DNA of 64,000 nucleotides from Trichosphaerium sp. ATCC 40318 (Eukaryota; Protista; Tubulinea): contig JALMLS010000027.1 of the NCBI GenBank assembly GCA_038496445.1, forward strand, positions 186,001 through 250,000. Direction: 5' to 3'. Shown here piece by piece: positions 10,514-59,985 of this stretch (positions within the stretch are counted from its first letter, which is position 1; each line of letters starts with the position of its first letter). Position numbers and translations under genes: made by a program. A model generated the notes under the pieces. It searched no databases. It saw only the letters and a list, made by a program, of their open reading frames with translations, and had not been told where the DNA came from.

Positions 10514-12948
10514 CTAGGAAAACTGCTGACCAATTGGTTTTCCTTCATCATATGTGGCATTATTCACATCTTCATCAGTGACGGTCTTAAGGTTACTCCA
10601 CATAAACTTCTCATCAAACCACGCTCCAAGTTTGGCATAGTCTGTTTTTTGTGCATACGCCATAGGTACTTTGAAATAAGGGAGTAAATTATCCCAATTC
10701 ATACTAAGTTTCTTTTGGGCAGCAGAACTACGTTGTGGATCTGTAACCCAATCAATTTGTTCGAATGGTTCAACAAAACACTCGATACGAGCTTGTCTTG
10801 GCAGTGTCAAGTATGCATACATCTTGACAAGGGATACGAGATCATGCCATGGTCGTGGAGTAAAGTTGACATCACGTTTGTACTCCAGGCACAATTTTGA
10901 AGGTGCAAACAGAACGTTGCCTTGGAACAGAACTTCCACGCCTTTTTTGGCAGCACATGCCCAGTCAATAATATACAACTCATTTTCAAACCATATCACG
11001 TTTGTAAGTGAGATATCCCTGAAAGAGAAAAAAGAGTTAATAAGAGCATAATAAGTTCAAGAAAAGAAAAAAAGAAGAAAAAAAACCCACGTGAATGAGC
11101 ATACCTGTGTACAAATCCTAAATTGTGTGCAACCTTTAGTGTCTTAACAAGAGATGAAAATGAGCACACAAGTCCTGTAATAGAAAATTCATCTGCACTC
11201 AGCACTTGACCCACGGGTTCAGATACGAAAAATATTTTGTTAGGGTTCTGGTAACAACATCAGTACAAACAAGAAAGAAGGAAAAGAAAGAAAAAAACCA
11301 AAACGTACTTGTCTTCTAGGTTTCCACGATGTACATGCTACTGTTGGAACATGAGCATCCTCACACGGATTTAGCTTATTGAGTACGTCCACTTCATGTT
11401 TCGCCTCCTCCAGGAATTGTGGAAGGAGATGTTTTACAGCATAAGTCTTATCATCTGCTCGGACCTGGTAGACAGATGCTGATGCACCTTTACCAAGAAT
11501 ATTCGTTGCTGCATAGTAAGTTCCACCAATTTTAAACTGAGGTACGGTCCATCCAAGTTGCTCAGGAGAGCATGCCATGAGTTGGTTGATCATCTTTGCG
11601 CCCTCAGAGTCTTTACCGACAAAATCATATACTTCTGTAAAATAGAATTTATCGCCTTTTGCAGTTATGCCGTCCCACTCCATACGCAAGAACTGGACGT
11701 ATTTTTCATTTGAAATAACTGCTGTCACTGATGTACGTGTTGGTTGAGCAGCCACAAGGCGAATACAATACATCCTAGAAACTATGTTAACAACATACGC
11801 AAAAGAAAAAGCAAAAAAGTCACACATGCAGAGCACGAAAAAGAGATAAGATGTCATACATTATTTGTCCAAGTTTTGCTGGTTCAAAACCTTTAGATTG
11901 TCCCACAACCAACTTCACCTCCCATGGTACTATAATCTGATACGATGTTGGCAATGTAATACCAAGGTTTCTAGGTGCCAGAAGAATGTCTGGTTTAGCA
12001 AAACCGTGCGTAGATGTTTTTGGAAATGTGTGGTTACTTTTGGTGTCAAAAGCCATCATGTAATCAGACGTATTCCCCTTGTTCAACAGTTCAACAGTTT
12101 TCTCGGTGAGGTAGTCTTCCTTTTGTTGCCAGGTTTTCTTTGGTTTATCTGTGGTTTTTGTGGCTGTTCGTTGCTTGAGCATCTTTGCAAACACGTTTTT
12201 AGGCAGTCCGCGAAAATACTTTAAACATGAACCGTCGAACCATGACTTCTCCTTGAATAGTATATCTCCAAGGTCGTCGAATTTACTGTACAGTTCTGAG
12301 TACTCTAAAATAAAAGTGTCATTTGAATACACGTGTTATCACAAAAAAAAGAGTGGTAAAAAAACTGAGCGTACTCAATATTGAGAGAGAATGGAGGTGG
12401 TCCTTTCGCAGTCTTATCAATGCAATTGCAGTGCCATGTTCTTTTAGTAGTGCGTCCCTTTCAGCATCTTTCGCGTCTCTTTCAGCATCTCTTGCATCTC
12501 TTTCAGCATCTCTTTGAGCATCTTTCGCTTTCAATTTTCGAATCTCGCTCATAATAATTTCACGTTGTGCATCTTTTGCATCTCTTGCTGCATCTTTCGC
12601 TTTCAATTTTCGAATCTCGCTCATAATAATTTCATCCATACTCCTTTCTTGTTCACAACCCTCATCATATGGTATTGAACCAGTTGAGCTTCCACTATAT
12701 TTATTTGACAGACCTACGCGTGTGGTAGGACTAGTTGGCCTCAAGGTCTTTGGTGTGTGCGTAATACGGCGTTTAGTTGGACAAGTTCGTTTTATTTTGA
12801 TGATTCGGCGGCCTTTGTTTGCCAAATGTAGGGCAGGTGTTTTGGTTGCGTTTTTTTGCTTTTTGGTGAGCCTGTCGGTATTTAGTGGCGCTTTTGGGGC
12901 TTTGCGCTTGTTTGACGCTTTCTTGCGAGTTTCTCTGAGTTTGGACAT
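10514..12948 (-). CDS. REase-like + FunK1/Crinkler-type protein kinase, copy A (short basic header)
   Basis: Multi-exon: basic header, DAERDA coiled coil, KPDI...WEVK...GQIM|MY...QPTR, then kinase LGKGASASVY, YAVK, FVHR|DISLTN, IIDWACA, WHDLVSL. Confidence 0.8.
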
Positions 12949-13348
12949 GTCGTCACTGTGCCCCTTTTGTGGGTTATGTGTAATACAAGTGTTTACTATC
13001 AGTGGTCGTTGTGTTGTTTCGTTAAAATAATGACTTAAATGTGAGCTTACAGGTGAACATGTGTGGATTGGTTTTTTCGTTTCACTGAGACTTTGATTTT
13101 CCGTTCAAAAGTGTCTGTTAGTGATAACGCCTACAAGGCTTAAGATCGTCTCTGATAACCTATGTGTTCATGCCCTTATTCTAGTTAGTATTCCTGTTAA
13201 CATGTTCGTACATGGTTACCAGAATACAACAAACCACTAGTCATTTCAAGATACTTGGGTGATAAGTTTATTTAATAGGGTGAAAAAAACAATATTTACA
13301 ATGTGATGTGTTATTATCAATCTAAAATCCATCAATCTATTTTACAAG

Positions 13349-16206
13349 CTAGGAAAACTGCTGACCAATTGGTTTTCCTTCATCATATGTTACATTATTC
13401 ACGTATTCATCAGTGACGGTCTTAATATTACTCCACGTAAACTTCTCATCAAACCATGCTCCAAGTTTGGCATAGTCTGTTTTTTGTGCATACGCCATAG
13501 GCACTTTGAAATGAGGGAGTAAATTATCCCAATTAATACTGATTTTCTTTTGGGCAGCAGAACTACGTTGTGGATCTGTAACCCAATCAATTTGTTCAAA
13601 TGGTTCAATAAAACACTCAATACGAGCTTGCCTTGGCAGTGTCAAGTATGCATACATCTTGACAAGGGATACAAGATCATGCCATGGTCGTGGAGTAAAT
13701 TTGACATCACGTTTGTACTCCAGACACAATTTTGAAGGTGCAAACAGAACGTTGCCTTGGAACAGAACTTCCACACCTTTTTTAGCAGCACATGCCCAGT
13801 CAATAATATACAACTCATTTTCAAACCATATCACGTTTGTAAGTGAGATATCCCTGAAAGAGAAAAAGAGTTAATTAAGAGGACATAATAAGTTCAAGAA
13901 AAGAAAAACCCACGTGAATGAGCATACCTGTGTACAAATCCTAAATTGTGTGCAACCTTTAGTGTCTTAACAAGAGATGAAAATGAGCACACAAGGCCTG
14001 TAATAGAGAATTCATCTGCGCTCAGCACTTGACCCACGGGTTCAGATACGAAAAATATTTTGCCAGGGTTCTGGTAACAACGTCAGTACAAACAAGTAGA
14101 AAAAAGTAAAGAATAAAAAACCAAAACGTACTTGTCTTCCAGGTTTCCAAGAGGTACGTGTTACTGTTGGAACATGAGCATCTTCATATGGATTTAGCTT
14201 ATTGAGTACGTCCACTTCATGTTTCGCCTCCTCCAGGAATTGTGGAAGGAGATGTTTTACAGCATAAGTCTTATCATCTGCTCGGACCTGGTAGACAGAT
14301 GCTGATGCACCTTTACCAAGAATATTCGTTGCTGCATAGTAAGTTCCACCAATTTTAAACTGAGGTACGGTCCATCCAAGTTGCTCAGGAGAGCATGCCA
14401 TGAGTTGGTTGATCATCTTTGCACCCTCAGAGTTTTTACCAACAAAGTCATAGACTTTTGTAAAATAGAATTTATCGCCTTTTGCAGTTATGCCGTCCCA
14501 CTCCATACGCAAGAACTGGACGTATTTCTCATTTGAAATAACTGCTGTTACTGATGTACGTGTTGGCTGAGCAGCCATGACACGAATACAATACATCCTA
14601 GAACTATGTTAACAATGCACGCAAAAGAGAAGAAAAAACAAGTCCGTACATTATTTGTCCGAGTTTTGCTGGTTCAAAACCTTTGGATTGTCCCACAACC
14701 AACTTCACCTCCCATGGTACTATAATCTGATACGATGTTGGCAACGTAATACCAAGGTTTCTAGGTGCCAGAAGAATGTCTGGTTTGGCAAAACCGTGCG
14801 TAGATGTTTTTGGAAATGTGTGGTTACTTTTGGCATCAAAAGCCATCATGTAATCAGACGTATTACCCTTGTTCAACAGTTCAACAGTTTTCTCAGTGAG
14901 GTAGTCTTCCTTTTGTTGCCAGGTTTTCTTTGGTTTATCTGTGGTTTTTGTGGCTGTTCGTTGCTTGAGCATCTTTGCGAACACGTTTTTAGGCAGTCCG
15001 CGAAAATACTTCAAACATGAACCGTCGAACCATGAGTTCTCCTTGAATAGTATATCTCCAAGGGCGTCAAATTTACTGTACAGTTCTGAGTACTCTAAAA
15101 TTAAAGTGTGAGTGTCATTTGAATACACGTGAAAAGAGTGGTAAAAAACTGAGCGTACTCAATATTGAGAGAGAATGGAGGTGGTCCTTTCGCAGTCTTA
15201 TCAATGCAATTGCATATTCATTTGATTTAGCCAGCGCCTTTGTAGCACGCATATCAGCATCTCTTTCAGCATCTCTAATATCTCTTTGAGCATCTTTCGC
15301 TTTCAATTTTCGAATCTCGCTCATAAGAATTGCATTCACGCTCTTTTCTTGTTCATAACCCTCATTTGTGACGACCACCTGTCGAAGGCGCTTAGATTTG
15401 GTAGTTTCTGGAGAATCAGATGCGTTGTATGATATTGAATCAGTTGAGCTTCCACTTGACCGCCTACTGACAGATATGTTCAGTGGAGATGCGGGTGCGA
15501 TTGGACCAGTGGATCTCGAGGCTTTTTGTTCGCTTGTGGCACGTGTAGAAGAGCCTGGAGTCTTACGAGTTCGTTTTATTTTGATGATTCGGCGACATTT
15601 GCGCCTTTTTTTTACTTTACCGGCAAGAGCTTGGGAAGTTGGGGTTGATCCCTTGGTTACTCTTGGTCGAATAGCCGGTTTGGGTACTACAGCGCATTGA
15701 TTAGAAGGCAACACAAACAAGTAATTCAAGGTATTTTTTTTGAACCGTTTTTTAAAAATCCGCGGTAAAAAAAAAAAAGCGTACGTTTATACTTTGTTAG
15801 GAGACTAACGGCCAATTGCGCCTTTACTTTTTTACCAATTGGCACTTCAAGGCTTCTACATAGATCCTTTAATTCTGGCACCTTCAAACGCTGCAATTGG
15901 ACTAGAATAACGGTTATTGATCAATAAGTGTCATTAAACGCAAAAAAAAAAAGTACTAAAAAAGGCTACCGTACGTGTTTTAGGATGCTGTTCAATGGTA
16001 TCAACTAATTGTTGAGCGGTACGGCCTTTTGTACTCAACTTTAGAGCAGAACAAATGGCGCGCAGCTCCCTTCGCGGAAATTTAGTCATCACTGACGCCA
16101 CTGTCAAGTGCTTTTGCTTTTTTGCTGCCCTTCTGGTGGATAGTGGCGCCTTTGGAGCTTTGCGCTTATTTGACGCTTTCTTGCGACCTCCCCTCAGGTT
16201 GGACAT
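13349..16206 (-). CDS. REase-like + FunK1/Crinkler-type protein kinase, copy B (header with two SAP-like motifs)
   Basis: Near-identical to copy A downstream; extra exons RRELRAICSALKLSTKG and LQRLKVPELKDLCRSLEVPIG resemble SAP/HeH motifs. Confidence 0.8.
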
Positions 16207-16397
16207 TATCGCTTCCCCCTTTTGGGCTCGTTTGATTTGCCGTCAGGTGGTCATAATGTTGTTTCGCTAAAAAATAATGACTTAAAACTTAATCCAAGCT
16301 AAGCCAAATACTTGTGAACAGAGGACACTTCGAATTTCTTGAGCTATAGTGGTTTAAAAACGTGAAACGTTAACCACGTGCTTTTGTGCTTCCAAGG

Positions 16398-16674
16398 ACC
16401 AACAATACGCATAGACACCTCTCTTTTGCCATTTGTAAATTGCACGATATACAACTTACCGTTCTTGGATACTTAATATTGCGTACCCTTCAAGTCAAAC
16501 ATTAAAATAAATACGCTGTTGTAGTTGCTTGTTTTACACAGGCCAAAGTGAATAATATTTAATGTTTGACTTGAAGGGTACAATAGTGATACTATCGCAT
16601 GCATTGTCATAGATATTAACATTTAGACATAACACAATTAATAGTACAATATGCCATCTGCAGGGTGATTCAAT
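16398..16674 (-). pseudogene. Inverted, decayed copy of the 3' part of the carrier-like gene (9753-9975)
   Basis: Reverse complement shares attgaatcaccctgcagatg, aagtatccaagaac, acaaatggcaaaag and tatgcgtattgttggt with 9753-9975, in the same order. Confidence 0.75.
16483..16581. repeat. 99-bp fold-back element with perfect 24-bp inverted ends (possible tiny TA-flanked MITE)
   Basis: gtacccttcaagtcaaacattaaa ... tttaatgtttgacttgaagggtac; absent from the homologous sequence near 9870. Confidence 0.7.
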
Positions 16675-16863
16675 GCAGTATACTGGTGTTAACAATTGTG
16701 CTCACGTGACAGTTGAAGGTCACTAAAACTTAAGGTTGTTTTTGCGATATTTATAGTGCCATATTTAGAGCTGATTGAAAGTGCATAGTCTTCTAATTTC
16801 TAAACATTGATTGCATAGTATTTAACGTTAACACCCTTGGATCAGGCACTATCAGTTAAAACA

Positions 16864-17926
16864 ATGAAAAGGGTAGGAAGCACCTTTGTGTATCAATTCC
16901 TTCTAATGAACACAATAGGTTAAAACAAAGGCAAATCAAACACAAGCTAGTATTCCTCAAATATTAACGCTTCCTGGCGACGTTTTCAATTGTATAATGG
17001 ATACTAACTGTGACGTGTATTTAAAACTACCGCTAGTTTGTAAGAGGATAGCAACCTCAACCAGGTTCAATGGTGCTTTCAAGAAGCACGGAAAATGGCT
17101 ACAGCGAGATTACTCAGGCAGATTGATTAAGGAAAGTTATTTTTTAAACGGTCAACTACATGGACCTACAAAAAAATGGGGTGCCCAGAGCTTAGTTTTC
17201 TATTGCAACTACATCAATGGAAAACGACATGGAGAGGAAAAGGCGTGGTATGGAAATACCCTATTATTAAAATCGCACTACCACTTCTTGAACGGAAAAC
17301 CACACGGTGACTGCCTTGAATGGTTTGAAAATGGGGACCCAAAGACGCAATGTACGTACACCAACGGACAAAAACAGGGAGATTGCCTAGAATGGTTTGA
17401 AAATGGGAACAGTTTAAAGACACAATGTACTTATGCCGATGGACTAAAACACGGAGACTGCCTAGAATGGTTCGAAAATGGGAACAAAAAGAGACATTAT
17501 TCGTACACCAAAGGTAAAGAAAACGGCGAGTTTAAACGGTGGATTGAAAGCGGTATTTTGCAAAAACATGAGCACTATGTACATGGTACGTTGCATGGAG
17601 AGGCCAGGGGTTGGGATATCGTCGGTAACTTAACTAGTCATTGTCACTTTGTAAAAGGTGCTGTCGAGGGAAAGTTCACACGTTTTTTTTATAATGGCAA
17701 TGTGGAGTCAGAGTGTCAATATGTTAATGGCACACGTCATGGGGAATTTAAAAAATATTTTTATGATGGTAGTATATGCAAGGAGGGTACTTACATTAAT
17801 GGTAAGCGTGAAGGGATACAGACACAGTATTGCATAAAAGGAAAAAAAAGAGTTTGCCACTATGAAAATGACCAAAAAGTCATTGTTAGTACAAAAAAAT
17901 CATTTACCTGGTACACCAGTGACTAA
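16864..17926 (+). CDS. F-box-like + MORN_2 (YwqK-like) repeat protein
   Basis: LTLPGDVFNCIMD...LPLVCKRI followed by about ten repeats of the form NGKxHGxxxxWxENG; main exon uninterrupted; probable 5' intron 16873-16918. Confidence 0.8.
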
Positions 17927-18603: not shown

Positions 18604-20177
18604 TTACATGTATCGGTAAATGGAAATATGCGTATCCTCATAAATCTCTCTCAAAGAGCTTTCCAGAAACATGTCATAATAATTAACAAAAATAGTGAGC
18701 ATACGATCAAATGAAACTGAGCTTTCACGAGATACTGAAACAGCAAAAAGACCTTTAGGTACTAGTGCTTTGATACCTTCATTTGTCACGTGATTACAAT
18801 CGTTAAGGCCAATAGTATGAACTCCAACAAGTGCTTTGACACCCTCATCTGTAACTGAAGTACCTTCTAGATTAATGGCATGAACTCCCGCAAGTGTTTT
18901 GACACCTTCATCTGTCACAGCAGTGTTGCAGAGATCAATGGCGTAAACTCTAGTGAGAGCTTTGATTCCCTTATCTGTAACCGAAGTGCCTCCAAGGTGA
19001 ATAATAGAAACTCCTGCAAGCGCTTTGATGCCTTCATCTGTAACTGAAGTTTCATCAAGGTAAATCGTATGAACTCCTGCAAGCGCTTTAATGCCTTCAT
19101 CTGTAACTGGAGTGCTTGATAGGAAGATGGAGTGTACTCCTCTTAGTGATTTTATACTATCATCGGTCACCGAAGTGTCAGTGAGATCAATGGTATGTAC
19201 ACCACTTAATGATTTAATTCCTTCATCTGTTACATTTGTGAGCATTAAATCAATAGTATGAACACCTTTTAATGCTTTAATACCATTGTCCGTAATACTT
19301 TTACAAGCACAAAGGCAAATAGAATGAACGCCATTTAGTGCCGTTATACCCTCATCAGTCACTGAAGTACGAGATAGGTCTATCGCATGTACACCACTTA
19401 ATGCCTTTATACCTTCGTCTGTCACATATTTGCAACGCCCCAGACCAATAGCATCAACACCTGCAAGTGCTTTTAAATCCAAATCATTAATGACACTACT
19501 TTTTTCATAGGCTTCTACGGACCTTCTAATAAAAGATGTATCAATATTAGAACATCCTCGTAGCAATGAATATGATGTGTTGTTCTCAACATTCACAACA
19601 ATGATAGTGTTGTTCATGATTCCTTTGTACTGTCTAATCTTTAGAATATCCTGAATGCTATACAGATATATCTTTTTGTATCCAACAACATCATGGATAA
19701 TATCAGCCATCAAACGACACGATTGAGCAATATTGAACCTTGATTTGGCATCTGTATGATGTACAATAGTTGCAATAACCTCTGGAGGAAAATCCATAAT
19801 GATAGGTTCTTTGTGTGTTGTCTGTTGCTGTGTTCTTTTTTTGTTGTTAGTGTGATCAGAAGTAAACAGTTTTTAGCGTACTGCCTTGTTTGTTTGCGCT
19901 TTGTTAACTTTTTGTCCTCAGACTCAACTTGTGAAACTCGTGTAGGTAAAATCGAGTCTGTTGGAAGTATTGTATGCAGTTTGCTTGTGTCATCAGTGGT
20001 TTTGAAGAGATATTCATCTAATTGTCGCAGATAGTGTGCATTTGCGACGTTTAAAATGGTTTCGAGTTGGTTACTGAATGTTGTAAGCTGTTCGGCTTTA
20101 ATTTTACTGAATTCTTCTTTGTGGTTTGTCTTGTAGTACACAATAGCCTGTTCAACAGATACAGAGGGAAAAATCAT
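18604..20177 (-). CDS. F-box + leucine-rich repeat protein (GVHTIDL-type LRRs); main exon covers 18604-19797
   Basis: MDFPPEVIATIV F-box-like motif, about 11 repeats of xTDEGIKALxGVHTIxL; the 19710-20177 ORF can splice in frame onto it through a short GT-AG intron. Confidence 0.8.
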
Positions 20178-20322: not shown

Positions 20323-21441
20323 ATGCAACACAATACCAGGTAATTTTTGAAGCACCTAAACTGTGTTTTGACGTGAACTAGAATAGAACTCGATTTATTG
20401 AGCCTACCTACCGAAATCCTCGCTATAATACTCTCCGGAGGCGAAAATACGCGTAAAATGGGATGTTGTTGCAAATACTTGTACAATATTGTACAACGCT
20501 TTGTGGGATATGGTAGCGTAGAAATAAGAGCACTCGAGATGTTTTCTTCGCTTTCTGACAGTCCTTTGTTGAAAAACACAGATTTCAGTGTTTCGAAAAG
20601 GATACGCCGTAGCGTAACTGGCGAACACTTAAAACACCTCAAAGGTATACGTACATTAAGCCTTGTAGGTTGCGAGAAGATAACAGCCGAAGGATTCAGA
20701 TTTCTCAGTGGCGTTGAGTCTATAAACGTTGAGTTTACGCGGATTACAGATGAAGGCCTAGCGTCATTTGCTGTCGCCAAGAATGTAAATATAACTAACT
20801 GTCGTTTCATAACTGATAAGGGCGTTCAAGCTCTTAAAGGAGTGCATACTATCAATGCCTCTAAGACACGTATTACAGATAAAGGTGTTGTAGCTTTCTC
20901 AGGATCTTACAATATAAGCCTTGCTTGTTGTACTGATATCACGGATTCTGGTATAAAAGCTTTAGCTGGTGTACATACAATAGACTTGTCTAAAACGTCT
21001 GTGGGCACTGAAGGACTCAAAGCTCTTCGTGGTGTACATACCATTGCATTATGTAATTGTAAATCTGTTAATGATGAAGGTGTTAAACATCTTGCTGGCG
21101 CTTATGAAGTCAACTTGAGAGGATGTAGACAAGTTACAGATGAAAGTGTGAAGTCATTAAAAGGTGTACATACAATTAATTTATTCGGAGTTAAAGTTAC
21201 TGATGAATCACTCTTCGCACTTGCTGGTGTTCATTCTTTGAATATCGGAGGTAACAGGAACGTGAGTGATGCTGGTTTAAGAGCTATTGCTGGTGTACAC
21301 TCATTGTGGATGGAGAGGTGCTATAACACTACTGAGGAAGGGATAAAGGCTCTTGTTGGTATAAAATACCTTAATGTAAGAGGTACAAAACTACAGCAAG
21401 AAACTGTGGATGTCCTTGTTGGTACAACCATACAAAAATAA
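20323..21441 (+). CDS. F-box + leucine-rich repeat protein, paralogue of the previous gene, head-to-head
   Basis: LLSLPTEILAIIL then the same GVHTI LRRs; ATG at 20323 with intron 20340-20381 supplies a start for the TTG-initiated ORF at 20398. Confidence 0.82.
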
Positions 21442-21486: not shown

Positions 21487-23179
21487 TCAATTGTTTGCTG
21501 CAATTGGGCTATAATCAGTACTCTTTTCTTCATGTGGTGTATTTTTTTCAGCTGTTTCTATTGCTTTAACATTCTTTATGTTGTCTAATTGTTGTTTCAA
21601 TGTAAACTTTTTGTACAGATACACTAGAATAGCTACTGTAACCTGTATTGAATGGTTAATATAAAACGTTCAGAATTAATTAATTGTAGCAACATTTACA
21701 AGCGACGTACTGGTAAAATCAATATTACCAAAACAATCAAAACAATACCCCATACTGGTATGCCAGTGGATTCATTAGCTTGATAACATCCATTTTGTTG
21801 AGGTTCGAACATCATGGCTGTACTGGTGAAGGTGGTTCGCAGTTTAACTGAATTGCATGTTGGTGACTGTCCTTGTACATCATCAAGTGTTCCTTCTCGG
21901 CATTCATATAAAATCGATGTTGTATTAAATTCAATATCATCTGATACAATTTTAAGGTTTCCTGACAGTTTGACACATCCTTGAACAGTCACTGAGATTC
22001 CATGTTGAAGAGTTATGTTTCGACCAAATGTCACATTATTCCCGATAACCAAATCAACATCAATGATTACTCCATCAATAATACGCTCATTTGTTACCCA
22101 CTGACCATTGATACATTGTAAATCTCTAAGTGTGAGTATTGTAGGTTCACATGGTTCTGAAAAAGAAGGTGGTGTTATTTATATTCTGTTATTGGTATGG
22201 AGGTACCTTGAGGTGATTGTGTTGGCACTATTGGTATAGTTGTAGGACTAATTGAAGGTATAGTTGTGGGACTATCTGTAGGTGTTTGCGTTGGGGAGAG
22301 TGTGGTCGGCAATAAAGTTGGTGGTCTTGTGGGAGGTGCTACCCAATCTATAGTGAGCCGTGGACGGTTGCTAGACTGTCCGTTTTGTCTGCTACCAATA
22401 TGAGCTATTTCATTACTATTAGCAACATTCGAAAAAAAAATAGTCACTCACTTCCTCCGTCAGCATCCCCTATTATTATCCACCCTTGATTTGATATTGT
22501 CCCTTGTGACCACTTTCTAACGGAGGCTTCAGGTATGTTAGCTCATGAAAGGTAAACACTGAAAGGCCATACAAGTAACAGTTACTTCAAAGTGTTGTAG
22601 CAAACGTCCGGGCTCTATAGATGGAATCATCGCTACACGTGGCCCACTGGGGTTAATCAAGGATTGATCTAGCGACTGTGTTTTAATTTGTGCACCTATT
22701 TTGAATATTGGTACGCACCGACATTAGTACCAGTTACCGAATTAGGGTTCCAAGAAGTAGTAGCTTCATAAAGCAACCCATTTGATCCTCCGGTATCGAC
22801 ATATACCCTCAAAGTAGCGCTCGTTATTTCAACACCATCTGGTATGGGACCACCTGATGTATTGAGTCAGTCGACATAGATGATAACAAATATAAAATAA
22901 GTAGCTCACCCTGACTACCAAATATTGAGAACTTTAACAGTGAATAATCCGGGCCGAGGCTATGTTCACCGTATCTTAAAAAAGGGTCTCCAACAAAATT
23001 ATTACTATTATCAATTCTTATCCATGTGTCTTCGCGATTGGAATACGAATCTGTAATTACCGCTTTTGTAAAGTTAGTATGACGATATTGGTTTTTATTT
23101 CTGGTTTTAAAAGCGCACCATAACAGGAGGAAGCGAGTATAAATATTACAATGGCTAAAACGAAGGTGCTTTTGGGCAT
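21487..23179 (-). CDS. Type I membrane protein: signal peptide, DNRLRE/CBM96-like domain, Pro/Thr stalk, Cys-containing beta domain, TM (copy 1)
   Basis: MPKSTFVLAIVIFILASS, EDTWIR, LLKFSI, ITSATLRVYV, KWSQGTISNQGWIII, IGSRQ...NRPRLTIDW, PTxSPT repeats, TM GIVLIVLVILILP. Confidence 0.72.
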
Positions 23180-23430
23180 CACGTGCTTTGTCGGTTGATT
23201 TTGAAAACTACAATTTTACTTCATGATTAAGTGACTTACCCAGATTGTCGCTTGATGACGTGTTTACATAATGTGTACTCTCGCTACATTAATTGCCCGG
23301 TTTGAGATCTTGTCGCTACATTATAGCTGATGTAGCCTATCTACATTAAGTCTATGAAGTTTACTGACAAACGCTTGGTAGATGGCAAAATACCTCCTAA
23401 AGGTTTACGTACCTGAAATAAGGATTACTC

Positions 23431-23476
23431 CAATTAATTTGTTCGGAGTCAAAGTTGCTGATGAATCACTTTTCAC
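23431..23476 (+). pseudogene. Remnant of the LRR gene (matches 21173-21218) at the tandem-duplication junction
   Basis: caattaatttgttcggagtcaaagttgctgatgaatcact versus caattaatttattcggagttaaagttactgatgaatcact. Confidence 0.7.
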
Positions 23477-23581
23477 AGCATCGCTTTTGAGACAGTATCA
23501 ATTACGAATTTTTGATATTTTACAGATGTTTTTACTTACCTCAGAACCATCTTAAACTTCAATTGTTATTTTAAACATGTA
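23476..23581. repeat. About 105-bp dispersed repeat, copy 1
   Basis: cagcatcgcttttgagacagt ... tcagaaccatcttaa ... aacatgta also found at 40681-40789. Confidence 0.75.
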
Positions 23582-23631
23582 CACAACTTACTAATGTCAC
23601 TTGATAAATGAACGAATTTATGAGAATAGTG

Positions 23632-25323
23632 TTAATTGTTTACTGCAATGGGATTATAGTCAGTGCTCTTTTCTTGTGCGCCACCTTGCTCAGTTAGTTC
23701 TGTTGATCTAATATTCCTTATAGTGTCTAATTTTTGCTTCAATGTACGCTTTTTGTAAAGATACACTAGAATAGCCACTGTCACCTACATTGACTTGTTA
23801 GCTTAAAATCCGTAGAATTTCAGTAAGATTCAGACGTACTGGTAAAATCAATATTACCAAAACGATCAAAACGATGCTCCATACTGGTAAGCCAGTGGAT
23901 TCATTAGCTTGATAACATCCATTTTGTTGAGGTTCAATCAACACAACTGTTCTGGTGAATGTTTTACGCAGTTTAACTGAATTGCATGTTGGCGACTGTC
24001 CTTGTACATCATCAAGTGTTCCTTCTCGGCATTCATATAAAATCGATGTTGTATTAAATTCAATATCATCTGATACAATTTTAAGGTTTCCTGACAGTTT
24101 GACACATCCTTGAACAGTCACTGAGACTCCATGTTGAAGAGTTATGTTTCGACCAAATGTCACATTATTCCCGATAACCAAATCAACATCAATGATTACT
24201 CCATCAATAATACGCTCATTTGTTACCCACTGACCATTGATACATTGTAAATCTCTAAGTGTGAGCATTGTAGGTTCACATGGCTCTAAAAAAAAGTGTT
24301 ATTATTGTATTGCTCTTGTTGCTACGTATGTACCTTGAGGTGATTGTGTAGGTGCTATCGTAGGTATAGTTGTAGGACTGTTTGTAGGTGATTGTGTCGC
24401 ACTTGAAGGTATAGTTGTGGGACTGTCTGTGGGTGTTTGCGTTGGGGAGAGTGTGGTCGGCGATAAAGTTGGTGGTCTTGTGGGTGGTGCTACCCATTCT
24501 ATAGTGAGCTTCGGACGATTGTTCGGTTCTGTTTGTTGTCTGCTGCCAATTTTAGCTATTTCATTACTATTAGCAACATTCGAAAAAAAAATAGTCACTC
24601 ACTTCCTCCGTCAGCATTATCCCCTATTATTATCCACCCTTGATTTGATATTGTCCCTTGTGACCACTTTCTTATGGAGGCTTAGGTATGTTAGCTCATG
24701 AAAGGTAAACACTGAAAGGGCCATACAAGTAACAGTTACTTCAAAGTGTTGTAGCAAAAGTGCAGCCTCTATAGTTGGAATTATCGCTACACGTGGCCCA
24801 CTGGGGTTAATCAAGGATTGACCTAGCGACTGTGTTTAATGTTCACATTGTCTATTTTGTATACGGTACCGGCATTACTACCAGTTACTGAACTAGGGTT
24901 CCAAGAGGCAGTAGCTTCATACAACAAGCCATTTGATCCTCCATTCCTAACAAATAATCTCAAAGTGGCTCGCGTTATTTCAACACCATCTGGTATGGGA
25001 CCACCTGGTGTTACGAGTCAGTTAGCATAGAATGAAAAAACAAGAAAAAAACAAATAACTCACCCTGACTACCAAATATTGAGAATCTTAACAGTGAATA
25101 ATCCATGTCGTCACCGTATCTTAATAAAGGGTCTGCAACAAAATTATTGTCATTGTTACTTCTTATCCATGTGTCTTCGCGGCTCGAATACGAATCTGTA
25201 ATCACCCCTTTGGTAAGTTAGTAAGATGACCTTGATTTTTATTTCTGGTTTTAAAAGCACACCATAACAGGAGGAAGCGAGTATAAATATTACAATGGCT
25301 AAAACGAAGGTGCTTTTGGGCAT
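23632..25323 (-). CDS. Type I membrane protein with DNRLRE/CBM96-like domain (copy 2, tandem duplicate)
   Basis: Same exon structure as copy 1; SREDTWIRS...LLRYGD...SLLRFSI, IGSRQ...NRPKLTIEW. Confidence 0.72.
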
Positions 25324-25668
25324 CACGTGCTTTGTCGGTTGATTTTGAAAACTACAATTTTACTTCATGATTAAGTGACTTACCCAGATTGTCGCTTGAT
25401 GACGTGTTTACATAATGTGTACTCCCGCTACATTAATTGCCCGGTTTGAGATACATCGCTTTATGACGTGTCGAGCGGCAATGCACAGCCCTTACACGAT
25501 CGTATATTATTTAGAATACACAACTTGAGTTGTAGTCAGTCAGCTGAAAATTCGTTCAAAATCATGTGGTTTTTTTTTTGTACAGCAAATTTTTGTTGCG
25601 CTATTTTGAAGTTAGTGGTTGATTTAAAACGTGATAACGAGGCACTAATTAATTGTTTTATTTACAAT

Positions 25669-51387: not shown

Positions 51388-51701
51388 TTTGTAGTGGCTT
51401 AAGCTCAAGCTGTTATTCCGTTAAGCAGCTAATTCGTCATACCCTTTTGTTACAACACCTCCAATCTTGTACGTACACATCTTCATTCATCCCAACGAAT
51501 ACGCGTTTACTGGAGCACCGCTTTTTTTTTGCTGGCATTTTACGTGTTCCCCAACGAAAACGTTCGTAAATATGTTCCTGAAATCACTCTTATGGTGTAA
51601 TTTCGTTTCTTTAAATTGAGGGGAACGAACAGTTTACCACTACTTTCTTATTGCATATTTTATTGTCGTTATGGGCTGTACACCTAATATGTATTCAGAA
51701 A

Positions 51702-53376
51702 ATGGCAAGACAAGCTCCTTTAAAACCTTGGCAAACTGGTAGCGCTGATGGCCCTCCTACAGCTACTAGCGCGTTAGCTCTTCAGTCCCCGAGCGCTATG
51801 AGCGCTGCTGGAAGCACCAGTCCAGCAATTCCTGCTCGCGATGGTACAGGCGTCTCGCCTGGTTTTTCCACGTATGGTGGTAGCTACAATACAGCAGGCA
51901 TGCTAACACGTTTGCCACATTTTGTTAATTATTCAGCAGGTGGATACGGAAGTAGTTACGGCAGTAGATATGGCAGTGGGTATGGTGGCTATGGCGGTGG
52001 TACGTAATATTACAATTCTTCCATTACATTGGGAAATACGAGTTTCCTTGTTTTTTTTTTTTGGTTTGGCGATTATTACTTTTTTTTGGCTTATTTCTTA
52101 TTTCAAGGCCTCTCGAGCTATGGTGGCGGGTATAATCGATTTGGTAGTTCTTATGGAGGCTATGGCAGTAGCTATGGTAGCAGGTATGGCGGTGGTTACG
52201 GAAGTAGTTTTGGAAGCAGTTATGGCGGTGGTTATGGTGGTGGCTATGGAAGTAGTTATGGCGGTTACGGCGGTGGCTATGGTGGTTATGGCGGCGGAAT
52301 GATGCAAAATGGACAAATGGGTCCTCAGGGTGGCATGATGCAAAACGGTGTACGTAGTATTATATTAATCTAACAGTGCTTTTTCACATAAGAGCCTATT
52401 CAGTTTTTTTTTGTTAAAACCCTTCTACTCGTCAGCGTCTACGTGTCATTTATTTATTTTTTTTTAATTTTATTCTAGATGGTACAACGCGGTATGGGAT
52501 GGCTACAACAAATTGAATCTGTCACAACAAATGTTGGCCGATTTTCTTGGCTTTTGGACACAAACTTTCAAGCTGTTCATGGTTCCTTTACTTCTATTCT
52601 ACAATTAATAGAAGGAGTCACAATACTCACTAGAGAGCTCGGTTGCACTTTCTCGAGCATTTTCATAATTAAACTATTCTACGCGGGTTTACGACGTATA
52701 ATCAATATGGTAATGAAAGCAATGGGCGCTAAAGAGGAGTTTAACCTCAAAGCGTTCGAAAAATTTTCAGAAGAGTCAAATGTGGCTGCTTCAGCTGGTG
52801 GAAAGCCTAAACCAAAGAACAAAGCATACTGGGCTTCTATTTTCGTTACAATTGGCGTTTTTTGTATTGGTGGACCTCTTTTGATTGGAATAATTGAAGG
52901 TATAATTAACCGCGTACGTGGTGGTAAAAAATCAGGTTCAATGGATAAAGCTTGGGGAAAAGGTGAAAGAATGAGGTACATAATACAAATACACGTGTAA
53001 AATTTTTTTATTTTTCCCAGCCGAAAAAGCACACTTGACTGATTTTTATTTCGAATTTTTCGACTTTTTGAATGAAATAAATGACTGGAAAAATTGTTAA
53101 AACTCTTTTGTAGAGCTCAACATGATTATCGTGCTCAGCGACGTGATGAGTTGGAATTTAGAGCAGGTGAAGTTATAGTGATAAAAGGTATGCAAAGCTT
53201 TTTTTTTTTTTTTTTTGGTGTTTTATTAATCTTCTTTGTTAGAAAAACCTTTTGATAAATGGTGGGTTGGTGAAATTGAAGGTGTCATGCCACCTCGGGT
53301 GGGACTTGTACCTTCGACTTTGTTGAGTCCAATTGTAGAAACTGTTAAAGTAGAACCTGTAGAGCCTGTAAAATAA
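51702..53376 (+). CDS. PEX13: Peroxisomal docking protein Pex13
   Basis: PLKPWQ, YG-rich region, QIESV...[26 protein letters not shown]-terminal SH3 ([27 protein letters not shown]). Confidence 0.92.
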
Positions 53377-53896
53377 GAAAATTACTGTTTACTACGCTGT
53401 TTGTTTGTTTGCTATTCTCCACAATGTTGTACGTGTTAAAAAACTGGTGATTTACAAAGGGTGTAGTAGATGTTCTCTATCATAGGGTCCAAGTGAGGGC
53501 GTAAATGAGGCAATAAAACCTATTGCTATCGGTCAATATTAATGTAATGTCTGTATTCGATATTGGATTCTGAGATGCGAAGTTGTGAAGTAGTAAATCA
53601 GCCAAAAGAAAAAACTGAAATTTCGCTAAAAATACACGTAATGAAAATTGTAAGCAAAAATCGTGGAGTATCCAAGTTTTTAATTAAAAAGTGTATTTAC
53701 AATAGAAACTGATGTATGTACTCACGCGTATTTAGCGTCATCGCTAGTGCTTCTAATCTTATGTCAAGTTAAAAACACGGAAAATAGCCTATTTCGGTTT
53801 AGAAGTCACACAACCAACAAATAACTAGTAAACTAGTATATTTCTCCTTCTATCCCTAAAGTAGAGTTGTGTTAGCTATCACTTAATATGACTACA

Positions 53897-56800
53897 CTTC
53901 ATCTGTCACGTGATCACAGTTGTTAGGACAACATCGTACAGGTTGATAAAACCTTGGAAGCAGTACAAAAAGCACGTGGTTAGCATTTTATAGAAACTTC
54001 GCGTCGCTTAAACATTTCCAGCTCAAGGAGAAATTCGAAGTGTCCTCTGTTCACAAGTATTTGGCTTAGCTTGGATTAAGTTTTTTAAGTCATTATTTTT
54101 AGCGAAACAACATTATGACCACCTGACGGCAAATCAAACGAGCCCAAAAGGGGGGAAGCGATAATGTCCAACCTGAGGGGAGGTCGCAAGAAAGCGTCAA
54201 ATAAGCGCAAAGCTCCAAAAGCGCCACTATCCACCAGAAGGGCAGCAAAAAAGCAAAAGCACTTGACAGTGGCGTCAGTGATGACTAAATTTCCGCGAAG
54301 GGAGCTGCGCGCCATTTGTTCTGCTCTAAAGTTGAGTACAAAAGGCCGTACCGCTCAACAATTAGTTGATACCATTGAACAGCATCCTAAAACACGTACG
54401 GTAGCCTTTTTTTAGTACTTTTTTTTTTTTTTTTGCGTTTAATGACACTTATTGATCAATAACCGTTATTCTAGTCCAATTGAAGCGTTTGAAGGTGCCA
54501 GAATTAAAGGATCTATGTAGAAGCCTTGAAGTGCCAATTGGTAAAAAAGTAAAGGCGCAATTGGCCGTTAGTCTCCTAACAAAGTATAAACGTACGCTTT
54601 TTTTTTTACCGCGGATTTTTCAAACTGCCGCGTGTTTTTGAAAAACGGTTCAAAAAAATACCTGGAATTACTTGTTGTGTTGCCTTCTAATCAATGCTCT
54701 GTAGTACCCAAACCGGCCATTCGACCAAGAGTAACCAAGGGATCAACCCCAACTTCCCAAGCTCTTGCCGGTAAAGTAAAAAAAAGGCGCAAATGTCGCC
54801 GAATCATCAAAATAAAACGAACTCGTAAGACTCCAGGCTCGTCTACACGTGCCACAAGCGAACAAAAAGCCTCGAGATCCACTGGTCCAATCGCACCCGC
54901 ATCTCCACTGAACATATCTGTCAGTAGGCGGTCAAGTGGAAGCTCAACTGATTCAATATCATACAACGCATCTGATTCTCCAGAAACTACCAAATCTAAG
55001 CGCCTTCGACAGGTGGTCATCACAAATGAGGGTTATGAACAAGAAAAGAGCGTGAATAATGCAATTCTTATGAGCGAGATTCGAAAATTGAAAGCGAAAG
55101 ATGCTCAAAGAGACGCGAAAGATGCTGAAAGAGACGCGAAAGATGCTGAACGAGATGCTGAAGTGCGTGCCACAAAGGCGCTGGCGAAATCAAATGAATA
55201 TGCAATTGCATTGATAAAACTGCGAAAGGACCACCTCCATTCTCTCTCAATATTGAGTACGCTCAGTTTTTTGACCACTCTTTTTTTTGTGATAACACGT
55301 GTACTCAAATGACACTCACACTTAATTTTATTGTAGAGTACTCAGAACTGTACAGTAAATTCGACAACCTTGGAGATATACTATTCAAGGAGAACTCATG
55401 GTTCGACGGTTCATGTTTGAAGTATTTTCGCGGACTGCCTAAAAACGTGTTCGCAAAGATGCTCAAGCAACAAACAGCCACAAAAACCACAGATAAACCA
55501 AAGAAAACCTGGCAACAAAAGGAAGACTACCTCACCGAGAAAACTGTTGAACTGTTGAACAAGGGTAATACGTCTGATTACATGATGGCTTTTGACGCCA
55601 AAAGTAACCACACATTTCCAAAAACATCTACGCACGGTTTTGCCAAACCAGACATTCTCCTGGCACCTAGAAACCTTGGTATTACGTTGCCAACATCGTA
55701 TCAGATTATAGTACCATGGGAGGTGAAGTTGGTTGTGGGACAATCCAAAGGTTTTGAACCAGCAAAACTCGGACAAATAATGTACGGACTTCTTTTTTCT
55801 TCTCTTTTGTGTGCATTGTTGACCTAGTTCTAGGATGTATTGTATTCGTGTCATGTCTGCTCAGCCAACACGTACATCAGTGACAGCAGTTATTTCAAAT
55901 GAAAAATACGTCCAGTTCTTGCGTATGGAGTGGGACGGCATAACTGCAAAAGGCGATAAATTCTATTTTACAGAAGTTTATGATTTTGTTGGTAAAGACT
56001 CTGAGGGTGCAAAGATGATCAACCAACTCATGGCATGCTCTCCTGAGCAACTTGGATGGACCGTACCTCAGTTTAAAATCGGTGGGACTTACTATGCAGC
56101 AACGAATATTCTTGGTAAAGGTGCATCAGCATCTGTCTACCAGGTCCGAGCAGATGATAAGACTTATGCTGTAAAACATCTCCTTCCAAAGTACCTGCCA
56201 GAGGCGAAACATGAAGTGAAAATACTCAATAAGCTAAAGCCATGTGAGGATGCTCATGTTCCAACAGTAGCACGTACCTCTTGGAAACCTGGAAGACAAG
56301 TACGTTTTGGTTTTTTATTCTTGATTGGAAAGTTTTGTGTTTTTTTTCCTTGTTTGTACTGACGTTGTTACCAGAACCCTAACAAGATATTTTTCGTATC
56401 TGAACCCGTGGGTCAAGTGCTGAGCGCAGATGAATTCTCTATTACAGGCCTCGTGTGCTCATTTTCATCTCTTGTTAAGACACTACAGGCTGCACACAAT
56501 TTAGGATTTGTACACAGGTATGCTCATTCACGTGGGTTTTTCTTATCTTGAACTTATTATGTCCTCTTAATTAACTCTTTTTCTCTTTCAGGGATATCTC
56601 ACTTACAAACGTGATATGGTTTGAAAATGAGTTGTATATTATTGACTGGGCATGTGCTGCTAAAAAAGGTGTGGAAGTTCTGTTCCAAGGCAACGTTCTG
56701 TTTGCACCTTCAAAATTGTGTCTGGAGTACAAACGTGATGTCAAATTTACTCCACGACCATGGCACGATCTCGTATCCCTTGTCAAGATGTATGCATACT

Positions 56801-57273
56801 TGACACTACCAAGGCAAGCTCGTATCGAGTGTTTTATTGAACCATTCGAACAAATTGATTGGGTTACAGATCCACAACGTAGTTTTGCTGCCCAAAAGAA
56901 ACTTAGTATGAATTGGGAAAATTTACTCCCTTATTTCAAAATACCTATGGCGTATGCACAAAAAACAGACTATGCCAAACTTGGAGCATGGTTTGATGAG
57001 AAGTTTATGTGGAGTAACCTTAAGACCGTCACTGATGAAGACGTGAATAATGCCACATATGATGAAGGAAAACCAATTGGTCAGCGATTTTCCTAGCTTG
57101 TAAAATAGATTGATAGATTTTGGATTGATAATAACACACATTGTAAATATTGTTTTCTTCACCCTATTAAATAAACTTATCACCCAAAGTATCTTGAAAT
57201 GACTAGTGGTTTGTTGTATTCTGGTAACCGTGTACGAGATTTTTAACAGGAAATACTAACTACAATAGGGTGG
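53897..57273. repeat. Right arm of the long inverted repeat; partner about 13180-16720
   Basis: Reverse complement of copy B and its flanks. Confidence 0.9.
54164..57096 (+). CDS. REase-like + FunK1/Crinkler-type protein kinase, copy C (SAP-like header)
   Basis: Same exons and motifs as copy B, opposite strand. Confidence 0.8.
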
Positions 57274-57557
57274 CGTGGGAAAGTACGTGTATGGAACAAG
57301 CTAGGTACATTTCTTCCATCTTACATAAAATAAAAATGCTGGTTGGATTCTATTTGGTTTTTATTCCACGATAACCGAGTCTGTTTTTATTTTTTATAAC
57401 CTACATGATTTTTTTGAATCTTCACACTGAAAATAAACGCATAGTTTGAATCCCATCACCGAAAATAAATACACAGTTTATTCGATAAGGTGAAAAAACC
57501 CCAATATTTACAATGTGTGTTATTATCAATCCAAAATCCATCAATCTATTTTACAAG

Positions 57558-59985
57558 CTAGGAAAATCGCTGACCAATTGGTTTTCCTTCATCATATGTG
57601 GTATTATTCACGTCTTCAGCAGTAACAGCCTTAATATTACTCCACATAAACTTCTCATCAAACCATGCTCCAAGTTTGGCATAGTCTGTTTTTTGTGCAT
57701 ACGCCATAGGTACTTTGAAATAAGGGAGTAAATTTTCCCAATTCATACTTATCATCTTTTGGGCAGTAGAACTACGTTGTGGATCTGTATTCCAATCAAT
57801 TTGTTCGAATGGTTCAATAAAACACTCAATACGAGCTTGCCTTGGTAGTGTCAAGTATGCATACATCTTGACAAGGGATACAAGATCGTGCCATGGTCGT
57901 GGAGTAAATTTGACATTGCGTCTGTACTCGATACACAATTTTGAAGGTGCAAATAGAACGTTGCCTTGGAACAGAACTTCCACACCTTTTTTGGTAGCAC
58001 ACGCCCAGTCAATAATATACAACTCATTTTCAAACCATATCACGTTTGTAAGTGAGATATCCCTGAAAGAAAAAAAGAGTTAATTAAGAGCATAATAAGT
58101 TCAAGATAAGAAAAACCCACGTGAATGAGCATACCTGTGTACAAATCCTAAATTGTGTGCAGCCTGTAGTGTCTTAACAAGAGATGAAAATGAGCACACG
58201 AGGCCTGTAATAGAGAATTCATCTGCGCTCAGCACTTGACCCACTGGTTCAGATACGAAAAATATCTTGTTAGGGTTCTGGTAACAATGTCAGTACAAAC
58301 AAGAAAGAAGGAAAAGAAAGAAAAAAACCAAACGTACTTGTCTTCCAGGTTTCCATGATGTACATGCTACTGTTGGAACATGAGCATTCTCATACGGCTT
58401 TAACTTATTGAGTATGTCCACTTCATGTTTCGCCTCCTCCAGGAATTGTGGAAAGAGATGTTTCACAGCATAAGTCTTATCATCTGCTCGGACCTGGTAG
58501 ACAGATGCTGATGCACCTTTACCAAGAATATTCGTTGCTGCATAGTAAGTCCCACCGATTTTAAACTGAGGTACGGTCCATCCAAGTTCCTCAGGAGAGC
58601 ATGCCATGAGGTGGTTGATCATCTTTGCACCCTCAGAGTCTTTACCAACAAAATCATAAACTTCTGTAAAATAGAATTTATCGCCTTTTGCAGTTATGCC
58701 GTCCCACTCCATACGCAAGAACTGGACGTATTTCTCATTTGAAATAACTGCTGTCACTGATGTACGTGTTGGCTGAGCAGACATGACACGAATACAATAC
58801 ATCCTAGAAACTATGTTAGCAACACACAAAAGAAAAAGCAAAAAAGTGACATTCAGGAGGTCATACATTATTTGTCCAAGTTTTGCTGGTTCGAATGTTT
58901 TGGATTGTCCCACAACCAACTTCACCTCCCATGGTACTATAATCTGATACGATGTTGGAAACGTAATACCAAGGTTTCTAGGTGCCAGAAGAATGTCTGG
59001 TTTAGCAAAACCGTGCGTAGATGTTTTTGGAAATGTGTGGTTACTTTTGGCATCAAAAGCCATCATGTAATCAGACGTATTACCCTTGTTCAACAGTTCA
59101 ACAGTTTTCTCGGTGAGGTAGTCTTCCTTTTGTTGCCAGGTTTTCTTTGGTTTATCTGTGGTTTTTGTGGCTGTTTGTTGCTTGAGCATCTTTGCGAACA
59201 CGTTTTTAGGCAGTCCGCGAAAATACTTCAAACATGAACCGTCGAACCATGAGTTCTCCTTGAATAGTATATCTCCAAGGTCGTCGAATTTACTGTACAG
59301 TTCTGAGTACTCTACAATAAAATTAAGTGTGAGTGTCATTTGAGTACACGTGGTACAAAAAAAAGAGTGGGGTCAAAAAACTGAGCGTACTCATTATTGA
59401 GAGAGAATGGAGGTGGTTCTTTCGCAGTCTTATCAATGCAACTGCAGCGTCAAGTCCGTTTAATCGTGCCTCTGTGATCTTCTCTCTCGCGTCCCTTTCA
59501 GCATCTTTCGCGTCTCTTTCAGCATCTCTTGCATCTCTTTCAGCATCTCTTTGAGCATCTTTCGCTTTCAATTTTCGAATCTCGCTCGTAATAATTTCAC
59601 GTTGTGCATCTTTTGCATCTCTTGCTACATCTTTCGCTTTCAATTTTCGAATCTCGCTCATAATAATTTCATCCATACTCCTTTCTTGTTCACAACCCTC
59701 ATCATATGGTATTGAACCAGTTGAGCTTCCACTATATTTATTTGACAGACCTACGCGTGTGGTAGGACTAGTTGGCCTCAAGGTCTTTGGTGTGTGCGTA
59801 ATACGGCGTTTAGTTGGACAAGTTCGTTTTATTTTGATGATTCGGCGGCCTTTGTTTGCCAAATGTAGGGCAGGTGTTTTGGTTGCCTTTTTTTGCTTTT
59901 TGGCGAGCCTGTCGGTGTTTAGTGGCGCTTTTGGGGCTTTGCGCTTATTTAACGCTTTCTTGCGAGTTTCTCTGAGTTTGGACAT
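57558..59985 (-). CDS. REase-like + FunK1/Crinkler-type protein kinase, copy D (short basic header)
   Basis: Header as in copy A, body as in copy C; convergent with C. Confidence 0.8.

Follow-up and report, generated by a model that had tools for sequence, protein, structure and literature searches.

The window analyzed here is a 64,000-nucleotide (nt) stretch of Trichosphaerium sp. ATCC 40318 (contig JALMLS010000027.1), an amoeba; its DNA is eukaryotic, with about 38% G+C and short introns. Repeat finding and a four-way alignment identified four paralogous genes in it, c1 (12948-10514, minus strand), c2 (16206-13349, minus strand), c3 (54164-57096, plus strand) and c4 (59985-57558, minus strand), encoding proteins of 710, 811, 819 and 717 amino acids (aa), respectively. 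We give a probability of roughly 55% to the reading that c1 to c4 are a dispersed, transcribed family of self-gated DNases, each built of a Lys/Arg-rich header (with two SAP-like motifs in c2 and c3), a heptad-repeat stalk, a PD-(D/E)xK domain and a FunK1-like kinase. According to this reading, the protein would enter the nucleus, the header would tether it to DNA or chromatin, and the stalk would pair proteins. DNA would be cut only when the fused kinase permits, the kinase phosphorylating either its own protein or its target. Such a self-gated DNase would resemble the fungal SPOK proteins, for which genetics has shown that killing depends on the nuclease and protection on the kinase. By analogy, the setting would most likely be genetic conflict (a one-chain toxin and antidote, self/non-self discrimination or defense) rather than housekeeping. 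A selfish or defense role, proposed in an earlier note made from the sequence of this DNA, is plausible on the same analogy.

The pairing of a nuclease of restriction endonuclease (REase) fold with a kinase underlies both Crinkler effectors and fungal Spok gene drives, and in neither, to our knowledge, is it understood how the kinase holds the nuclease in check. What c1 to c4 appear to offer is the same pair, in an amoeba, behind a putative DNA-tethering header with SAP-like motifs and a presumed nuclear localization signal (NLS), and behind a repeat-bearing stalk. With several intact transcribed copies, two header types and a host that is considered growable and crossable, the kinase-dead versus nuclease-dead test made for SPOK would become possible in a new lineage. 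If the family were shown to act as a driver or in incompatibility, toxin-antidote nucleases encoded by single genes would occur outside fungi as well.

Middle domain and kinase

The middle domain is encoded by exon 2 and the first half of exon 3 (core exons and introns are numbered as in c1 and c4). On the minus strand it spans positions 11564..12134 in c1, across intron 2 and assigned by homology with the modeled domain of c4; 14387..14924 in c2, with intact motifs; and 58593..59141 in c4, where it was modeled through a 349-aa open reading frame (ORF; 58290-59339). In c3 it spans 55507..56044 on the plus strand, with support from motifs and fold. The earlier note had proposed that this domain is a PD-(D/E)xK nuclease. 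Sequence searches were run exon by exon, and models cover the 349-aa ORF and a 191-aa domain. Pfam gave no match to the middle domain at E values of up to 1 or 10, either with the exons or with the 349-aa ORF, and searches of PDB sequences with pieces and with a domain profile returned chance-level matches only.

For structure prediction, AlphaFold2 was given the 349-aa ORF of c4, in which intron 2 is read in frame, together with an alignment of homologues; the 21 intron-coded residues are a gap in every homologue. A second model was made of the 191-aa domain only. The predicted local distance difference test score (pLDDT) was 63.6 for the first model, with about 70 to 85 over most of residues 70 to 150, and 63.9 for the second. 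Both models showed, by DSSP, a helix, three strands, a long helix and then strands, which corresponds to the alpha-beta-beta-beta-alpha-beta core. In the domain model, KPD lies directly before strand 2 (residues 57 to 61), and E79-V-K81 lies on strand 3 (residues 76 to 80).

In an exhaustive structural search, residues 65 to 253 of the 349-aa model matched BpuSI (3s1s_A; Z 9.2, root mean square deviation 3.6 over 139 aligned residues) and a putative REase-domain protein (9y1l_B; Z 8.7), the only nonkinase entries in the match list of this model. The domain-only model matched BpuSI (Z 7.1), 9y1l (6.2), TT1808 (6.0), D212 nuclease (5.7), Cfr10I (5.5), Hjc (5.4), Bse634I (5.4), DrdV (5.2) and HsdR 3h1t (5.1), as well as NucC, SgrAI and others, and PD-(D/E)xK proteins made up most of the 50 rows listed. 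Like the c1 to c4 domain, those of BpuSI (type IIG), HsdR (type I) and Hjc have this core fold, with D...(D/E)xK in the corresponding place, but they are only 8 to 13% identical to it in sequence and belong to proteins that carry no kinase. In the ESM Atlas, the domain model reached template modeling (TM) scores of 0.60 to 0.65 with Pkinase_fungal/DUF6826 clusters and 0.51 with a bacterial HSDR_N cluster. In addition, the D...(D/E)xK...Q residues are kept in homologues that are only about 25% identical. Taking together the consistent match lists, the positions of the motifs and their retention at this level of identity, we consider it very probable that the middle domain adopts a PD-(D/E)xK fold, its catalytic activity being less certain than its fold. 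The models and structural matches are thus in agreement with the REase fold and the intact D...ExK of the earlier note.

The motif set itself (KPD, WEVK and GQI in the nuclease-like domain; GKGASASVY, AVK, HR|DISLTN and IIDW in the kinase) was present in all four copies. In c3, KPD is encoded at 55645-55653 (Asp at 55651-55653), WEVK at 55717-55728 (Glu at 55720-55722 and Lys at 55726-55728) and GQI at 55771-55779, all on the plus strand. The last element had been given in the earlier note as GQxxY, and this part has to be revised: it was read across intron 2, and in the spliced sequence GQI precedes a Met codon that the intron divides as AT|G, with MY coming next, giving Q-I-M-M-Y, that is, QxxxY. 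A QxxxY motif has been described in HsdR and SPOK3 as a requirement for nuclease activity (PMC6660238). Intron 2 of c4 (58804-58866, minus strand) is 63 nt long, in frame and stop-free, and RNA contigs are spliced at this site; if retained, it would lengthen the nuclease-like domain by 21 residues within its long helix.

The kinase is encoded by the second half of exon 3 together with exons 4 and 5 (10517..11554 in c1, across introns 3 and 4; 13352..14377 in c2; 57561..58583 in c4, all on the minus strand; 56054..57093 in c3, on the plus strand) and comprises GKGASASVY, AVK, EAKHEV, HR|DISLTN, IIDW and an FAP segment, with all of the usual kinase catalytic residues present. In c3, the G-loop is encoded at 56114-56140, AVK at 56168-56176, DISLTN of the catalytic loop at 56593-56610 (catalytic Asp at 56593-56595) and IIDW at 56638-56649. 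The kinase N-lobe of the 349-aa c4 model matched protein kinases at Z 10 to 10.7, and hhalign placed exon 3 (99.6%, E 9e-25) and exon 5 (97.9%, E 6e-13) of c4 on the profile of the homologous family described below. Together with HR|DISLTN in all four copies, these family-profile matches support the assignment to a FunK1/HRDIS-type kinase with intact catalytic residues, with the correction that HRDIS is not contiguous within an exon, as intron 4 splits it into HR|DIS.

A full HMMER scan of 1.84 billion representatives returned only 14 at E of 1e-3 or less, one of which was spurious (P0002, E 4.6e-9), being a bacterial CARDB-repeat protease with ten SPE..WT.P..G.YY repeats. The homologues are uncultured or environmental eukaryotic proteins that carry Pfam DUF6826 (PF20713) followed by Pkinase or Pkinase_fungal, and they lie on contigs of 1 to 2 kb from JGI, Logan, ENA and one NCBI assembly (GCA_049309645.1), one of them coming from JGI sample 3300052695. 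Queried with the 349-aa ORF, a word index of proteins gave no match within its length range of 192 to 610 aa, which would miss full-length kin. Further word searches, for which P0008 and the family alignment served as queries, added three relatives (four identifiers, P0015 to P0017 and P0021) and then ordinary kinases. The DUF6826+kinase proteins (P0001, P0003 to P0017 and P0021) are colinear with c1 to c4 throughout the nuclease-like domain and the kinase and have in common with them Q.WW, D.H, G.RKPD, G(D/E)xK, KGQ, QP.R, IQFFR, LGW.P, GxGAxSxVY, VVK, HRD....N and xDWG. They differ from c1 to c4 in overall sequence (24 to 38% identity; phmmer E 2e-9 to 9e-4) and in having unlike N-termini without SAP.

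FunK1 proteins (Pkinase_fungal, PF17667) have the same HRDIS..N catalytic loop as c1 to c4, and their Atlas feature scores were 0.90 to 0.94; they differ in host (fungal versus amoeba), and FunK1 has neither the SAP/NLS-type header nor the stalk. Only P0007 (28.3 bits) exceeded the PF17667 cutoff of 24.1 bits, P0006 scoring 24.0. In both of these homologues the end of the Pkinase_fungal model fell on the kinase, and in P0008 and P0003 model positions 18 to 84 fell on the nuclease-like region, which takes up the first 85 or so positions of the Pfam model. Because the start of Pkinase_fungal falls there, DUF6826 appears to be a PD-(D/E)xK module that also opens FunK1-type proteins, which would give both DUF6826 and the N-terminal part of FunK1 a likely identity; no mention of DUF6826 was found in the literature searched. 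As judged from these sequence matches, c1 to c4 are shown to be related to uncharacterized DUF6826+kinase proteins that overlap FunK1.

Several observations weigh against a kinase-gated nuclease. Both models are of middling confidence (pLDDT of about 64), the strand 1 to 3 half being weaker in the domain-only model, and Z scores of 5 to 9 fall in the range that the search tool calls common. Foldseek of the domain model against the PDB found no match below E 0.05, and when the 349-aa model was used, matches to the kinase N-lobe filled the Foldseek list. Exon 2 alone reached only E 3e-3 against the family profile, with its motifs in register, and the Pfam models DUF6826 and Pkinase_fungal gave no direct match on the window exons, in which the nuclease-like domain is split by intron 2. 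The ordinary neighbors of the genes (PEX13, MORN and F-box/LRR genes) and purifying selection would also fit a cellular job, and the nuclease-like domain could be a noncutting DNA-binding or regulatory module of the kinase. A housekeeping alternative would be a chromatin or DNA repair kinase whose nuclease fold serves in DNA binding or regulation, possibly without cutting, and whose copies arose by tandem and segmental duplication. In its favor are the selection and the neighborhood just named, the lack of transposon hallmarks inside the repeated units and the N-terminal module shared with FunK1 kinases, which are usually regarded simply as kinases. However, the retention of D...(D/E)xK...Q at about 25% identity and the rarity and patchiness of the family (14 of 1.84 billion representatives), unlike a core repair factor, make this alternative improbable in our view.

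Header, stalk and the comparison with Crinklers and SPOK

The first 60 residues of the proteins contain 19 to 23 Lys/Arg and 1 or 2 acidic residues. No hydrophobic stretch was found in the first 45 residues, and hence there is no signal peptide. The header contains KRKAPK-like boxes, which resemble classical NLSs and may act as such. The K/R-rich, NLS-like header without a signal peptide that the earlier note had described was thus recovered. Genes c2 and c3 reach further 5' than their long ORFs imply, through two added exons with one SAP-like motif each (Pfam PF02037). The scored motifs of c2 and c3 reached 23.0, 22.5 and 21.2 bits, just below the cutoff of 23.9 bits, at E 6e-5 to 2e-4: motif 1 of c3 (54290..54385, plus strand; E 6e-5, 23.0 bits), motif 1 of c2 (15985..16080, minus strand; E 8.6e-5, 22.5 bits) and motif 2 of c3 (54480..54584, plus strand; E 2.1e-4, 21.2 bits), the translations of both c3 motifs having been checked. 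Motif 2 of c2 (15792..15896, minus strand) is one residue off the c3 exon among the residues printed (QLQRLK versus QLKRLK).

The header is followed by the stalk, a charged helical stretch (IIMSEIRKLKAKDA...) that bears a tandem repeat of 21 nt, or 7 residues, the number of which varies among the four genes. In c3 the repeat is AKDAERD-like and lies at 55094..55155 on the plus strand (Tandem Repeats Finder: period 21, 3 copies, 95% matches); the equivalent arrays are at 12451-12523 in c1 and 59483-59560 in c4, both on the minus strand. The stalk, which the earlier note had read as a coiled coil, may as readily form a single stable helix. The full-length homologues P0016 (residues 1 to 160) and P0021 (residues 1 to 140) have unlike N-termini before the same nuclease-kinase pair, and no SAP or other Pfam match was found in these N-termini. 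The front end thus seems to be exchangeable across the family.

The earlier note had also called the proteins Crinkler-like. According to a review (PMC5289972) that reports Zhang et al. 2016, REase+kinase accounts for about one-sixth of Crinkler C-termini, the nuclease being the presumed toxin and the kinase the regulator, and Crinkler-like proteins are described in free-living eukaryotes. The REase+kinase modules of the Phytophthora CRN8 type have the same REase fold followed by a kinase and are targeted to the nucleus (PMC5289972). They differ, however, in their header, which has a ubiquitin-like (Ubl) fold and LxLFLAK...DWL/HVLxxP motifs: no Pfam match to such a header was found in c1 to c4, which have the K/R-rich region, with or without SAP, instead. 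Lacking this header, c1 to c4 are not Crinklers in the strict sense; the likeness holds for the REase+kinase pairing and does not extend to membership in the family. A true Crinkler-type effector, exported to the nucleus of another cell, could draw on this pairing, on the free-living carriers and on the NLS-like header. We nevertheless regard it as highly improbable for c1 to c4, which have neither the Crinkler header nor a signal peptide or hydrophobic segment and whose SAP-like motifs would fit action in the cell's own nucleus.

The SPOK proteins of Podospora (Spok1 to Spok4) have their parts in the same order: the N-terminus is helical, a coiled coil that bears a variable-length repeat, a PD-(D/E)xK domain that includes QxxxY comes next, and the kinase, with its catalytic Asp, stands last. 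In SPOK3, the nuclease mutant K240 loses killing, while the kinase mutant D667 becomes toxic (PMC6660238), and SPOK1 damages DNA in Escherichia coli and yeast (PMC9972908); SPOK proteins are located in the nucleus and have DNA as their target (PMC6660238, PMC9972908). By analogy, the c1 to c4 proteins may work like SPOK. A related but narrower proposal is that the family is a Spok-type single-gene toxin-antidote driver, the nuclease killing nuclei or spores that lack the gene, the kinase protecting carriers and the gene spreading by distorted inheritance at meiosis or after cell fusion. The order of parts, including the variable repeat and QxxxY (PMC6660238), is in line with this proposal, as are the match of the domain model to HsdR 3h1t, the best HHpred match of SPOK3, and the multicopy, dispersed nature of the family. 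ESM Atlas features also fell near SPOK2_N clusters, with scores of 0.79 to 0.90, which below 0.9 are leads only. On the other hand, no Pfam SPOK2_N match was found in the exons or ORFs of c1 to c4, and sequence similarity to SPOK was not shown. The SPOK Cys/His cluster C-x3-C-x13-C-x5-H-x7-H before the kinase is absent, the linker of c1 to c4 having a single Cys, and the kinase resembles an ordinary eukaryotic protein kinase, whereas that of SPOK is atypical. Weighing these differences, we consider a Spok-type driver rather unlikely.

A still more specific version, a SPOK-like single-chain toxin-antidote outside fungi in which a kinase-gated, chromatin-tethered nuclease destroys nuclei or meiotic spores without a matching copy, seems to us unlikely. 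As framed, it assumes fusing plasmodia with many nuclei, and the two header types would set specificity. If true, it would explain in molecular terms how nuclei are eliminated once incompatible strains have fused, or how spores are killed.

Copies, transcription and selection

Introns of c1 to c4 were positioned by alignment and by their GT..AG boundaries, giving four introns in c1 and c4 and six in c2 and c3. After intron removal the reading frames were complete in all four copies, with no stop and no frameshift. The models of c1 (five exons: 12948-12375, 12304-11860, 11774-11309, 11247-11105 and 11018-10514) and c4 (five exons: 59985-59391, 59311-58867, 58803-58338, 58277-58135 and 58062-57558), both on the minus strand, are frame consistent and encode a header of type A, which is K/R rich and without SAP. 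The seven exons of c3, on the plus strand (54164-54395, 54475-54591, 54705-55256, 55337-55781, 55834-56299, 56375-56517 and 56592-57096), rest on RNA joints and frames. The splice sites of c2 were transferred from this RNA-supported model, giving seven frame-consistent exons on the minus strand (16206-15975, 15901-15785, 15686-15159, 15094-14650, 14597-14132, 14070-13928 and 13853-13349). Both c2 and c3 encode a header of type B, with two SAP-like motifs in succession. With the full set of named motifs and open frames in every copy, the earlier statement that four copies are free of inactivating lesions stands.

In 150-column windows, the shared core of c1 to c4 was 91 to 100% identical at the nucleotide level. 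Because the core differs by 3 to 9% between copies, the 5' parts are of two kinds and the flanks are unlike, the copies are not duplicates made by the assembly, an artifact that the earlier note had named as a possible objection. The headers of type A (c1 and c4) were 95 to 100% identical and those of type B (c2 and c3) 94 to 100%, while headers of type A and type B were 68 to 78% identical to each other, with large insertions and deletions. In the core, however, the nearest neighbor shifts along the gene, c3 being equal to c4 in exons 2 and 4 and c1 being nearest to c3 in exon 5, which points to gene conversion or recombination. The description of the family as recently expanding is therefore only partly borne out: the near identity within header pairs speaks for it, but the core has a synonymous divergence (dS) of 0.08 to 0.145, and its mosaic identity fits gene conversion equally well.

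RNA evidence was provided by contigs of four public runs (X1 to X4) from three studies, placed on positions 54100-60000. For c3, the contigs contained splice joints at 54395/54475, 54591/54705, 55256/55337, 55781/55834 and 56514/56589; for c4, they contained the joint of intron 4 at 58061/58134, and the exon 3 boundary at 58803 was also seen. Joints that are chimeric between c3 and c4, at 56299/58277 for intron 3 and again for intron 4 at 56589/58138, represent transcripts spliced from a close paralogue, each aligning in part to c3 and in part to c4. Counting these, every intron of c3 has a GT..AG joint in the contigs. Some contig pieces were identical to c3, with zero differences. The contigs stop short of the type A first exon of c4, and they represent RNA at the level of the family, the copies not being separable with certainty and expression levels not being given. 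Since the joints fall at predicted introns, we conclude that the c1 to c4 family is transcribed.

Exon by exon over exons 2 to 5, the ratio of nonsynonymous to synonymous divergence (dN/dS) was 0.15 to 0.34 in all six pairs, indicating purifying selection on all four copies. Open frames, dN/dS and contig joints together uphold the view of intact, constrained copies of a transcribed family.

Two header types on a core homogenized by gene conversion are also what a defense or non-self system might show, in which the proteins would attack foreign DNA or nuclei, such as those of viruses, engulfed prey or an incompatible fusion partner, with the kinase as sensor or switch. Conflict systems commonly combine a nuclease with a regulatory kinase, and the kinase region is weakly like the defense kinases PD-T4-6 and MAD6. 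These PADLOC/NCBIfam matches, like that to Bud32, nevertheless reflect generic kinase similarity only, and the dN/dS values give no sign of diversifying selection among c1 to c4. Nor were relatives found in viral collections: a search with exon 3 of IMG/VR and of JGI metagenome contigs returned no close relative, and Foldseek of the domain model against BFVD gave nothing below E 0.01. No link of the family to giant viruses or endosymbionts, which the earlier note had given as possible targets, was thus found in IMG/VR and BFVD. A defense system is, in our judgment, an improbable explanation. The sole giant-virus row of sizeable coverage in BFVD was A0A2U7UEV6 of Pandoravirus macleodensis (DUF5898), at E 0.25 and a TM score of 0.44 by query, which is far from significant.

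Genomic setting

The genes c1 and c2 lie head to tail, and c3 and c4 lie tail to tail. The repeated unit consists of the gene with about 90 bp upstream and about 170 bp downstream. No terminal inverted repeats, which we looked for as a mark of transposons, were found around single units. An imperfect inverted repeat (9875-9980, plus strand; 16393-16474, minus strand) brackets the c1-c2 pair as a whole. It contains three exact blocks, AAGTATCCAAGAAC, ACAAATGGCAAAAG and TATGCGTATTGTTGGT, each present only at those two sites of the window. The bracket could represent the ends of a cargo element of about 6.6 kb or the relic of an inverted duplication. Just outside the right bracket lies a perfect 24-nt inverted repeat (16483-16506 and 16558-16581), a hairpin with a loop of 51 nt.

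Beyond the c1-c2 pair, positions 16997-17926 on the plus strand contain an intronless ORF of 309 aa with MORN_2 repeats (Pfam E 2e-18) and a 75-nt tandem repeat at 17291-17511. It is followed by a divergent pair of LRR_6 genes at 18604-19797 (minus strand; E 7e-19) and 20398-21441 (plus strand; E 6e-21); the former alone has an F-box (E 4e-4), and a 63-nt repeat lies at 18817-19117. At 21704-25452 there is a tandem duplication of about 2.1 kb in three segments that are 88 to 96% identical; its ORFs at 21696-22052 and 23798-24268 had no Pfam match, and one of them ends in a hydrophobic stretch. On the other side of the window, a peroxin-13 gene (51651-53000, plus strand; Peroxin-13_N E 1e-18) with Gly/Tyr/Ser-rich repeats at 52161-52297 lies just upstream of c3, so that the c3-c4 pair stands beside an ordinary housekeeping gene.

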